The translations under genes and the position numbers were made by a program. Below the pieces are notes generated by a model that was not told the DNA's origin, made no database searches, and saw only the letters and a list, made by a program, of their open reading frames with translations. From sequence record OQ828465.1: a stretch of 64,000 nucleotides of DNA, one strand, 5' to 3'. Positions 9,021 to 11,783 of this stretch are shown piece by piece (position 1 is the first letter of the stretch; every line of letters starts with the position of its first letter).

Positions 9021-9164
9021 ATGCAAGTACGAATTGAGGTAATCAATAGTGAGGGCAATCTGGATATCGAAGAACGGGTTGATATCCGCCCAATGAAGGG
9101 GTTAACGGCCTGGATGGTCGCTCTAGCTATCAAAGGTCTTGTAGCTAGCTTTGCACGTAAGTAA
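9021..9164 (+). CDS. 47-aa protein with C-terminal amphipathic helix (not in track)
   Basis: AAGGAG SD, ATG 9021, MQVRIEVINSEGNLDIEERVDIRPMKGLTAWMVALAIKGLVASFARK, own terminator. Confidence 0.7.
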   Translation: MQVRIEVINSEGNLDIEERVDIRPMKGLTAWMVALAIKGLVASFARK

Positions 9165-9175
9165 GGCGACATAAA

Positions 9176-9197
9176 CCCCTCTCCACATGGAGAGGGG
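9176..9197. terminator. Bidirectional terminator
   Basis: CCCCTCTCC-ACAT-GGAGAGGGG between convergent genes. Confidence 0.8.
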
Positions 9198-9214: not shown

Positions 9215-9718
9215 TTATTTAGTTAACGGCTTGTTTAATTCATTTAACTGGTTATTGTTATTAACAGCTTCATTATGGGTAATATTTCTACATAATTCAA
9301 TTATGTATTCTACCTCAGAATAAGCTAATTCAAAGAATTCAGTTAATGACATATTAGATAAGCTACCTACTTTATACTTGAAGAAATCTCTAGTCAGTCT
9401 CCTTCTCAACCCACCTTCGATAAAGTCCTCTTTAGGATTTACCTTATTTAACCACATGGGTCCGTTTTCTGGTGAACCGATATCGTAATCAAGTAGATAT
9501 GCTTCTCTTGTTAAACGTGCTGCTGTAGACGGTCTTACTGCCCCTACTGTCGATAATAGTCTATCTAAGTGTGTATCATCTTCAGTTAACTTATCATAAC
9601 CAAAGTTTGGATGTAGGATGTGACCACTATCTTCCTTGAAAGTGGCCTCAAGACGACTATATCTCAGATCATTAACTACACCATCCGGTTTGACTTCGAG
9701 GCCGCCAAAGTAAAAAAA
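9215..9718 (-). CDS. gp76-like frame; probably translated as a -1 frameshift extension of the gp77-like gene
   Basis: Frame is open from 9730 to 9215 but the first ATG is at 9457; it overlaps T_TTT_TTT at 9718-9712 in the upstream gene. Confidence 0.65.
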   Translation of the reverse strand, partial: FFYFGGLEVKPDGVVNDLRYSRLEATFKEDSGHILHPNFGYDKLTEDDTHLDRLLSTVGAVRPSTAARLTREAYLLDYDIGSPENGPMWLNKVNPKEDFIEGGLRRRLTRDFFKYKVGSLSNMSLTEFFELAYSEVEYIIELCRNITHNEAVNNNNQLNELNKPLTK

Positions 9719-11277
9719 GTTGACAGCATGTCAATAGGGATTAAGTGTGGGAAACGTTCTTTAAATTTAGTAGCAGCAGGTGACTCACATACTGGACAAT
9801 TCCAACTTGTAATTGCAATCATTCCAATTAGTTGTGAATCAATGAAGTTACTCACCGCATTAATAAAGCGGTCATTATATTCCGGTGTGGATAGAATATT
9901 AGTTAAGAACTTTTCAATAGTTTCACGATTAGTGGTTGCAGTACGAATATTGTCTTCAGAACTTTCACCATCGTCATCTTCACGTACTTTAATTTCTTTA
10001 ACAAAATGTGAGAACTGACGGGCAATAGAGATCTTTTGTAAACGTGCAATATACTGAGAACGTTGCGGACCATCGACTGGTTCATTAAAACTACCTTGAG
10101 TCATATCGATAATTGAGTTAATCCAACTATCACCAGACTCTCGGCGATCAGCAATTGTACACATCTCAAGAACAACACCAACGTCACCAAACATTTCAGT
10201 TACTTGAGTTTCAATACGGAATCCTTCTTTATAAGTCTTAAGATCAGATTCAGTACATGCATTAAACTTACGTGCAATATATTTCTTTTGTTCTTCTGAG
10301 AATGCCAGTAGATCATATTGAACAAGCGTTGACATATTAAGTTTCGCTGTTTCAATATGGTTACATGTATTGGCATCTGCAATGCATGGATAACTATAAT
10401 TAAATCCATCTGGATACATAGTCGCCGCTAGTGCATGATGTAAGAATGGTTCATCAGCTACTGAGATAACATGCTCTAGGTCAGTTGGAGTGTTGAACTT
10501 ATAGTTGGATTGAATAACACATGCAAGTGCTAAATTACTAACCATGTTAAGTAACACAGCTGCCATGTTTGAGAACAGCATACCTTTTGATTCAGCGCCT
10601 AGCCGGATCTTTAATTGTGCTAGACGTGCTTGTAGGGCAGCTACTTCAGTACCAGTAGGTGCACGTAGTTTTACCCAAATACCTGAATGAGGTAGGAAAG
10701 TATCATATGGCGTACCGATGTTAGCTTTACGTGTTAGGAAAACTAGAGTTTCATCATCGGTCATTTTACGACCACTGGTATTAAATACAGGTCGGCCAGG
10801 TCGAATGATCTTTTCACCATAAGGAATTTCACTAGACCATTCAGAACCTTCTCGGGCAGTTGCACCGATTGGTGCATCTTCAACAATAGAGTGAGCTAAG
10901 CCTTCCAGAATAGCAGCTGTCCACTTTACACCGTCACTAGTGTCATCTACTTTATTATCAGCAAATGCTTTAAATAGTTCTTTATTGTGATCCAGGAAAT
11001 TATAAACAGTCTGGGGATTCTCACGTAGTAAAGTAAGAATGCTAGCACTATCTTTAATAGCCGGTTCAGAAGCATCCCGGATATTTCCAGTTTTAGCATT
11101 ACGTGGAATACGTAGTTTAATTTCTTTTTGATCAGGAACGAAAGGTGGAGTTTCCACCTCGTCATTATTTTCAATACTAGAGTCAGGATCGTGTTGCGCA
11201 TTGATCTCATCAATTTGATCTAGTAAATTCTCTTCTGGAGTATCATCGTACTCATTATCGAAGTCAGCAGTAGCCAT
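9676..11277 (-). CDS. Conserved gp77-like protein; candidate tail/baseplate assembly chaperone
   Basis: 533 aa, acidic N-terminus, Cys pairs (CIADANTC, CPVC), slippery site 11 codons before the stop. Confidence 0.7.
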   Translation of the reverse strand: MATADFDNEYDDTPEENLLDQIDEINAQHDPDSSIENNDEVETPPFVPDQKEIKLRIPRNAKTGNIRDASEPAIKDSASILTLLRENPQTVYNFLDHNKELFKAFADNKVDDTSDGVKWTAAILEGLAHSIVEDAPIGATAREGSEWSSEIPYGEKIIRPGRPVFNTSGRKMTDDETLVFLTRKANIGTPYDTFLPHSGIWVKLRAPTGTEVAALQARLAQLKIRLGAESKGMLFSNMAAVLLNMVSNLALACVIQSNYKFNTPTDLEHVISVADEPFLHHALAATMYPDGFNYSYPCIADANTCNHIETAKLNMSTLVQYDLLAFSEEQKKYIARKFNACTESDLKTYKEGFRIETQVTEMFGDVGVVLEMCTIADRRESGDSWINSIIDMTQGSFNEPVDGPQRSQYIARLQKISIARQFSHFVKEIKVREDDDGESSEDNIRTATTNRETIEKFLTNILSTPEYNDRFINAVSNFIDSQLIGMIAITSWNCPVCESPAATKFKERFPHLIPIDMLSTFFTLAASKSNRMV

Positions 11278-11288
11278 TTAAAACTCCA

Positions 11289-11783
11289 TTATTGTTGAAT
11301 TAGTTTTTCGTCCCAACCAGCTTCTCGAAGAGTGCCGATCATCGCTAGGATTACACCATCAATACCGCGTTCAATAGCACCTTCAATACCAGTGTATTTA
11401 GTAACAAGTTCACTGATGAGTTTTAGTTCATCTTCATTATTTGCTGGACCAGCCTTACCTTGATGTTGTGCATATAGGACACTGATAATTTTAGTTAGTC
11501 GATTAAGGTCAGCAATAACTGTTTGTAGGTTCTTTTGGAATCCAGTAGGATCAGATAACGTCGGAATGATTTCATTGATCTTATTAATAACTGGATTAAT
11601 GAATACTTCAGTTTGTAGAATACGCTTACCTACAGAACCTGCTAGTACATTGACAACATCCCAACCATCGCGGTTAAGAATATGATCAGCTGCGGCAGCT
11701 GATGCTCCAACTGCACGTTCAAATAGACGTAGAGTCTTTTCCTGTTCTTTAGTTAGAGTTGGTTCTTTAGCTTTATTTGACAT
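11289..11783 (-). CDS. Hypothetical protein (gp78-like)
   Basis: 164-aa helical ORF with SD GGAG. Confidence 0.75.
   Translation of the reverse strand: MSNKAKEPTLTKEQEKTLRLFERAVGASAAAADHILNRDGWDVVNVLAGSVGKRILQTEVFINPVINKINEIIPTLSDPTGFQKNLQTVIADLNRLTKIISVLYAQHQGKAGPANNEDELKLISELVTKYTGIEGAIERGIDGVILAMIGTLREAGWDEKLIQQ

Follow-up and report, generated by a model that had tools for sequence, protein, structure and literature searches.

A conserved T-run and an open -1 frame point to two-way decoding of the gp77-type core gene of phiKZ-like jumbo phages

The gp77 locus and its two reading frames

The 64,000-nucleotide stretch of sequence record OQ828465.1 analysed here (the window) is from a phage of the phiKZ species; over approximately 2.8 kb around the locus of interest, it matches the Pseudomonas phages PaZh_1 and PA_ZH1 at 100% identity, and 47 phiKZ-type records match at 95-100%. 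The locus is the 3' end of the orthologue of PHIKZ077, hereafter the gp77-type gene, where an original prediction had placed a candidate -1 frameshift joining this gene to a second open frame downstream. The open reading frame (ORF) in frame 0 and the stretch that is open in the -1 frame overlap (Table 1), and the final 19 codons of the frame-0 ORF lie within the overlap. The run of seven T's (T7) found there stands in the X_XXY_YYZ register of frame 0 and encodes Phe521-Phe522; 11 sense codons separate these two Phe codons from the frame-0 stop.

Our check of the ORFs and frames bore out the original description of the site, namely a T7 heptamer near the end of the 533-amino-acid gene and a -1 frame that stays open to position 9215. 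The first ATG, GTG or TTG after the run in the -1 frame is indeed the ATG at 9457, 85 codons downstream, and the predicted sizes of 522 plus 165 residues, giving a fusion of ~687 amino acids, are correct. The identity of the downstream piece has to be revised: it had been called gp76-like and is actually PHIKZ076.4, gp76 being on the other strand.

The G+C-rich hairpin listed in Table 1 is likely a terminator that closes the operon of gp78, gp77 and the extension. With the end of the -1 frame on one side and small plus-strand ORFs on the other, it resembles a bidirectional terminator serving convergent transcription units. No terminator-like site was found between the frame-0 stop and position 9457.

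Table 1. Features of the gp77 locus in the window
Feature	Positions	Strand	Description
Frame-0 ORF	9676..11277	minus	533 amino acids; PHIKZ077 orthologue; phrog_4585; core gene of phiKZ-like jumbo phages
-1 frame open stretch	9215..9730	minus	171 sense codons plus stop (9215-9217)
Putative C-terminal extension within the -1 frame	from the run to 9215	minus	165 codons; phrog_12109; Gly-rich, low-confidence start and helical domain at the end
Overlap of frame 0 and frame -1	9676..9730	minus	55 nucleotides; one T7 run, the proposed slip site
PHIKZ076.4, annotated as a separate 80-amino-acid gene	9215..9457	minus	last 80 codons of the -1 frame; ATG not conserved in relatives
G+C-rich hairpin	9176..9197	.	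T-tracts on both sides and strands; directly past the -1 frame stop
PHIKZ078 orthologue	11289..11783	minus	164 amino acids; phrog_14050; upstream gene of the same strand block, syntenic throughout the family

Conservation of the run and selection on the two frames

The junction could be read in 88 relatives: 21 annotated phage records and 67 of 71 IMG/VR contigs. The annotated records comprise 11 Pseudomonas-clade lineages, 6 distant genera (Xoo-sp14, Goslar, RSF1, SA002, RAY, and PCH45) and the 4 most distant phages (phiEaH2, an SPN3US-like Seoulvirus, Halocynthia phage JM-2012, and Aeromonas phage D6). These readable relatives span phages of Pseudomonas to those of Erwinia, Salmonella, Ralstonia, Vibrio, and Aeromonas, and the gp77 family as a whole was found in 226 phage records, with Pseudomonas, Erwinia, Salmonella, Serratia, Ralstonia, Klebsiella, Vibrio, Aeromonas, and others as hosts.

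The alignment of orthologs for which the original prediction had called revealed the same run and the same layout in 88 of 88 relatives. In each of them, a run of 5-8 T's occupies the same Phe-Phe position (Val-Phe or Phe-Leu in four IMG/VR loci), 10-46 codons ahead of the frame-0 stop. Across 72 distinct ORFs, the run is T7 in 27, T6 in 23, T8 in 15, and T5 in 7, and its frame-0 reading is N TTT TTY in 63 of the 67 IMG/VR loci and GTT TTT in the other 4. The open -1 frame begins at or before the run and continues across the frame-0 stop in 10 of the 11 Pseudomonas-clade lineages, in all 6 distant genera, in all 4 of the most distant phages, and in 67 of 67 IMG/VR contigs, reaching the end of the small downstream "gene" after 154-246 codons. 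The eleventh Pseudomonas-clade lineage, Pseudomonas phage RVTF4 (PQ015378.1), is open across the stop and closes after 83 codons, and the homology resumes in another frame as an annotated small coding sequence; this additional frame break is either an assembly indel or real decay. The homologous continuation measures ~155-190 residues and lacks a conserved start codon. When the -1 piece was used as a tblastn query, 68 Pseudomonas-phage records were matched. Alignments to the distant matches (phiPA3, 201phi2-1, PA1C, Psa21, D6, Phabio, Noxifer, Viktualia, and HPP-Temi; 34-40% identity) begin at residue 1-6 of the open frame, upstream of all annotated starts, and span two annotated genes.

Homopolymers are classic places for sequencing and mutational indels, and a layout of this kind could arise from a sequencing indel in the run or from a gene recently broken by a frameshift mutation. 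However, in 47 of 47 independently sequenced phiKZ-type genomes the corresponding 519-nucleotide region is exactly 519 nucleotides long, with zero indels and identical run length, and the overlap is identical in reference phiKZ; the indel in the run that the original prediction had named as a possible pitfall is thus ruled out. The two-frame layout of all 88 readable relatives, from many genera, the purifying selection on both parts described below, and the lack of an in-frame fused version among the 39 matches of our protein scan speak equally against this explanation. We regard artefact or decay as scarcely credible, sequencing error and recent pseudogenization being ruled out by the distribution of the layout.

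All 24 annotated records fetched call two genes, and none carries a joined coding sequence. The locus might accordingly consist of two separate genes that involve no recoding, the second of which would be translated from a lineage-specific or non-canonical start or by re-initiation, with the overlap as a compact junction. Indeed, the annotated start in 201phi2-1 overlaps the stop, as in coupled genes, and in some lineages a TTG or GTG is found 8-25 codons after the run. Nevertheless, the starts are spread over ~80 codons, the first possible start codon lying 8 to 85 codons after the run across 16 lineages. In phiKZ, RAY, Phabio, and PCH45, there is no start for 85, 68, 56, and 51 codons, respectively, despite the presence of conserved residues upstream of it (e.g., His and Gly within the first 40). 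With the extension as query, HMMER matched 39 of 1.84 billion representative proteins, all of 45-175 amino acids and with N-termini scattered over query positions 6-83. No start codon for the extension is conserved in the 16 lineages or among these 39 called proteins, and the normal ATG that orthologs were expected to have if the original prediction were wrong is thus not seen. Furthermore, two separate genes offer no explanation of why, in all 88 relatives, no stop interrupts the -1 frame as far back as the run, an outcome whose chance we put, as a rough estimate, at ~0.5 per lineage. Nor do they offer a reason for the retention of TTT against codon bias or for the few differences of the closest pairs between the run and the stop, which fall at the -1 wobble position. 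Taken with the RNA counts considered below, which point the other way, this makes two independent genes a quite improbable explanation.

The annotation of Erwinia phage RAY (2832-3380 of its locus) is a case of its own: gp266 is extended 136 nucleotides back into gp267, to a start codon upstream of the run, which shows that the annotators noticed the open -1 frame but took it as a gene overlap.

On its own, a lone T7 run in an AT-rich genome means little, and the observation is taken far beyond chance by the comparative evidence. T7 runs are depleted in the window, with 15 found vs 31.7 expected from shuffles. Elsewhere in the same genes, TTT accounts for a median of 27% of the Phe codons, the share being below 35% in 47 of the 72 ORFs, and in the Xoo-sp14 gene, which has a G+C content of 63%, none of the 14 other Phe codons is TTT and the run is still kept. 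The run is retained in every ORF, including those in which TTT is the rare Phe codon.

The differences between closely related sequences indicate which frame is constrained on either side of the run. We counted them at positions 1, 2, and 3 of the -1 frame, taking the 120 nucleotides before the run as the upstream segment. In three close pairs, the counts before the run are 15, 3, and 0; 13, 2, and 0; and 15, 3, and 1, which corresponds to the frame-0 wobble position. After the overlap, the differences fall mostly at the -1 wobble position (1, 0, and 6 in the closest pair; 8, 3, and 11 in Psa21/D6). The overlap itself is nearly invariant in close pairs, and its few changes are at the -1 wobble position. 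By this measure, the coding constraint switches from frame 0 to frame -1 at the run.

The ratio of nonsynonymous to synonymous differences per site (pN/pS) after the first possible start codon is 0.14-0.43 in five pairs. Before the first possible start, it is 0-0.5 in four pairs, from Pseudomonas phages, and ~1.0 in SA002/RAY, whose linker is poorly conserved. As gauged by pN/pS, both parts are under purifying selection. Polymorphism within the phiKZ clade offered too few differences before the ATG (1 synonymous and 1 nonsynonymous) to serve as a test of selection. From the run to the frame-0 stop, conservation is about the same in the two frames; in the comparison of phiEaH2 with SPFM21, for example, identity is 16 of 21 residues in frame 0 vs 17 of 21 in frame -1. 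This equal conservation fits dual coding, in which a short and a long isoform would both be used. No in-frame fused homologue was present among the 39 HMMER matches, and the search with gp77 gave only proteins of 485-633 amino acids. Given the conservation of the run and of the frames, the constraint switch, and the lack of an in-frame fusion, the two-frame state is the native and universal state of this locus.

Decoding at the T-run

Motifs for -1 shifts in Escherichia coli are a Z_ZZN tetramer or an X_XXZ_ZZN heptamer (PMC4066793), and the window holds an all-T heptamer in the frame-0 register. It is accompanied by a long open -1 stretch that has no start of its own, by family-wide conservation of motif and layout, and by the constraint switch at the motif. 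The full heptamer is present in the window and in 9 of the 17 lineages compared; elsewhere, the A-site tetramer is combined with a UUU or GUU P-site codon. We consider it probable that the gp77-type core gene is decoded in two ways by a programmed -1 ribosomal shift, giving a short isoform of 533 amino acids and a long one of ~687. The junction of the two frames by a -1 shift, the central claim of the original prediction, is in this respect strongly supported by comparative sequence evidence.

According to this model, most ribosomes would stay in frame 0 up to its stop and produce the 533-amino-acid protein, and a fraction of them would slip back by one base on the U-run of Phe521-Phe522. The A-site Phe-tRNA would re-pair with UUU in the -1 frame, and the P-site tRNA could do likewise in sequences, such as this window, that have a U ahead of the run. 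The slipped ribosomes would then translate 165 further codons, so that in their product a Gly-rich linker and a helical domain would take the place of the 11 residues that end the short form. It follows from such two-way decoding that "PHIKZ076.4" would be the end of the extension rather than a gene with its own start. By analogy with other pairs made by frameshifting, we infer a gp77 core common to both isoforms and an additional binding module confined to the long one, the ratio of the two being set by the shift.

Several observations weigh against a ribosomal shift of the classic kind. With T5 only in 7 of the 72 distinct ORFs and the first U of the heptamer missing in many, the classic two-tRNA slip cannot be universal in the family. 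The all-U heptamer is a weak shifter in E. coli (PMC5009743), and the long form would therefore probably be a minor species, unless it is helped by something undetected: a phage factor, a pseudoknot or, as in T7 gene 10, pairing over a long range. The evidence for a trans-frame product is of a comparative nature. Finally, RNA counts are ~6 times higher over PHIKZ076.4 than over PHIKZ077 (PMC12571901, supplementary file 7), which also counts in favor of two separate genes. The excess may stem from a separate 3' transcript or internal start, or from a stable 3' fragment protected by the terminator. The proteins tabulated in the supplement of that study are the annotated ones only.

The search for a stimulatory element adds to these reservations, none having been found by the following approaches. 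RNAalifold applied to 10 Pseudomonas-clade sequences gave just 4 weak pairs, and single-sequence folds downstream of the run in 13 lineages (z from +0.2 to -2.4) revealed nothing consistent. The best of the downstream folds, in PA1C (z -2.4) and Psa21 (z -2.0), use a conserved G+C-rich stretch after the run as the 5' arm, a pattern that is not general. The pairing energy of nucleotides +4 to +15 was no better than that of shuffles in 16 lineages (mean z +0.32). No upstream Shine-Dalgarno-like element was apparent in the codons before the run, for which no systematic scan was made.

The original prediction had pointed to a hairpin immediately 5' of the site. A 6-bp inverted repeat does exist there in phiKZ; it is absent from the codons just 5' of the run in relatives, and its fold is ordinary (z = -1.5, matched by 16 of 200 shuffles). 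We have thus rejected it as a stimulator.

The main rival to a ribosomal shift is transcriptional slippage, whereby the phage RNA polymerase would stutter on the T-run and add a base to the mRNA, leading to the same long isoform. Several points would suit slippage: the conserved element is a homopolymer, with 7 or 8 T's in 42 of the 72 distinct ORFs; no ribosomal stimulator was found; and these phages transcribe their genes with unusual multisubunit polymerases of their own. In addition, U7 runs are avoided in genes partly owing to transcriptional slippage (PMC4066793), in line with their depletion in this window. Conversely, 30 of the 72 distinct ORFs have just 5 or 6 T's, which is short for productive polymerase slippage. 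Runs of ~9 are typical of productive slippage by bacterial polymerases, compared to the 5-8 seen here. The run also keeps a conserved register with respect to frame 0, which matters for tRNA re-pairing and not for a polymerase; this argument is weakened by the Phe-Phe codons, the conservation of which would fix the register too. On balance, we consider transcriptional slippage unlikely and retain the programmed ribosomal shift as the preferred explanation.

Full-text literature searches, with subscription journals outside their coverage, retrieved no prior description of this frameshift, in agreement with the original prediction, which knew of none for phiKZ-like phages. The part of a large 2016 recoding review that was available does not mention phiKZ or jumbo phages.

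Relation to known systems and leads to function

The proposed arrangement resembles lambda G/GT, and the equivalent pair conserved in other long-tailed phages, in that a -1 shift close to the upstream ORF's 3' end swaps a short tail for a second domain behind a shared N-terminal part. Lambda G has ~140 residues, and the class is one of small proteins (~100-150 amino acids) that are roughly doubled by the shift, whereas here a protein of 533 amino acids would grow to ~687. The G/GT genes are located between those for the tail tube and the tape measure (PMC8570332), whereas in all annotated relatives the gp77-type gene has gp75 (a helicase), gp78, gp79 (a head protein) and RNA-polymerase subunit genes as its neighbours. 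Moreover, no tail-chaperone family matches either part in Pfam, NCBIfam, PHROGs, PDB sequence, or Foldseek searches. Neither lambda product is found in the virion (PMC5009743), and the Churi orthologue of gp77 is entered in a table of non-structural proteins. The suggestion of the original prediction that the locus encodes a lambda G/GT-type tail-chaperone pair thus fails on size, location, and similarity, and we have rejected membership in that group.

Bacteriophage T7 10A/10B provides another parallel, a C-terminal extension through a low-level -1 shift late in a phage gene, with no nearby stimulator evident. In T7, gene 10 codes for the capsid protein, both forms of which are found in the virion; by contrast, gp77 is listed as non-structural and is unrelated to it in sequence and fold. 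An element >200 nucleotides downstream of the shift site, in the terminator, is involved in T7 (PMC5009743); here, the likely terminator hairpin is ~500 nucleotides downstream of the overlap. In the case of E. coli dnaX tau/gamma, a -1 shift on a homopolymer-like heptamer also gives two isoforms of a non-structural protein (PMC7412058; PMC5009743). Unlike the extension proposed here, for which no stimulator was found, the dnaX shift truncates the protein, has strong flanking stimulators, and yields the two forms in approximately equal amounts.

Sequence searches shed little light on the role of gp77: no match to gp77, the extension or gp78 was obtained in Pfam, NCBIfam or the PDB sequence search, and PHROGs offered unnamed families only. 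We modelled the two parts separately and used each model as a separate query. The AlphaFold model of the 533-amino-acid part has a mean predicted local distance difference test score (pLDDT) of 78.8 and a predicted template modelling score of 0.80, with residues 1-41 disordered and acidic. In this model, the last helix (517-532) spans the slip site, and the long form would lose the end of that helix as a consequence. For the extension, the pLDDT is 57.5 overall and 70-83 over approximately the last 65 residues, which form the helical domain. Conservation reaches at least 90% of 20 family members for four Cys residues of gp77 (298, 305, 494, and 497, in two pairs), and their pattern suggests a structural metal site bridging distant parts of the chain.

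The structure comparison that had been proposed with the original prediction produced no match of the G/GT type and, for gp77, brought weak but repeated matches to T4-like hub assembly proteins. Foldseek with the gp77 model matched no solved structure, and with the extension model it gave no match. In BFVD, the gp77 model matched its own family, followed by at least 9 T4-like proteins of ~225-285 amino acids named baseplate hub assembly protein, chaperone or subunit; these were identified by the names of their records. Most of the matches have E values of 1e-4 to 6e-2 (one of 0.5) and probabilities of 0.89-1.0 (0.44 for that one), with target template modelling scores of ~0.43-0.58 and predicted structures on both sides. 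The predicted fold of gp77 is thereby weakly likened to that of T4 gp51-type hub assembly proteins, a likeness which we treat as a lead only.

In T4, gp51 and gp26 serve as chaperones of hub assembly; gp51 is required for the hub to assemble and does not form part of the particle (PMC3004832). The likeness of gp77 to gp51 lies in the repeated matches of its model; in contrast, there is no link at the sequence level, gp77 is twice as long, and it is not encoded beside hub genes. We know of no frameshift in T4 gene 51. The Churi orthologue of gp77, gp256, is detected by 15 min after infection, and the record of 201phi2-1 lacks a mass-spectrometry note for the gp77-type protein. Given the weak but repeated matches, gp77 may act as a morphogenetic chaperone in the wider sense. 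Antisense oligomers against PHIKZ077 were toxic to the host (PMC12571901), and owing to this toxicity, the experiment is uninformative on the gene.

If the gp77-type gene is decoded as proposed, the public genomes examined mis-annotate one of the ~70 core genes of nucleus-forming jumbo phages (Chimalliviridae and relatives), and the small downstream "hypothetical protein" is the C-terminal domain of a second, longer isoform. One would then expect peptides from the part of the -1 frame that precedes the annotated start, along with a species of ~78 kDa, and work in which "gp77" or "gp076.4" is cloned or knocked down by itself would be affected. The conservation of the recoding signal from Pseudomonas to Vibrio phages, against codon bias, suggests that the ratio of the isoforms matters to these phages. 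The weak fold link to T4 hub assembly proteins, for its part, would be the first functional lead for this orphan core gene.

A bolder reading, which we advance as a long shot, is that the T-run sets the ratio of the isoforms of an essential assembly factor throughout the family. The shared core, related to the T4 gp51 chaperone, would bind one partner and the extension would recruit a second, so that the isoforms would cooperate like G and GT. The slip might then possibly be made by the non-canonical phage RNA polymerase instead of the ribosome, in which case these enzymes would be credited for the first time with a programmed transcriptional recoding.

A few minor features of the locus and of the databases deserve mention. 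A 47-amino-acid ORF on the plus strand (~9021-9164) adjoins the locus and is labelled "baseplate hub protein" in the Churi record (1522-1665 of its locus) and hypothetical elsewhere; the label is curious beside the gp51-like fold matches of gp77 and is probably an annotation artefact. The 132-amino-acid ORF at 9620-10018 on the plus strand, antisense to the gp77-type gene, is annotated in no record and is most likely spurious. Two fragments of the extension have been deposited as bacterial "hypothetical proteins", one of 96 amino acids from Klebsiella pneumoniae (90% identical to phiKZ, on a 288-nucleotide contig) and one of 109 amino acids from Escherichia coli (143 contigs), both of which probably represent jumbo-phage DNA inside bacterial assemblies.

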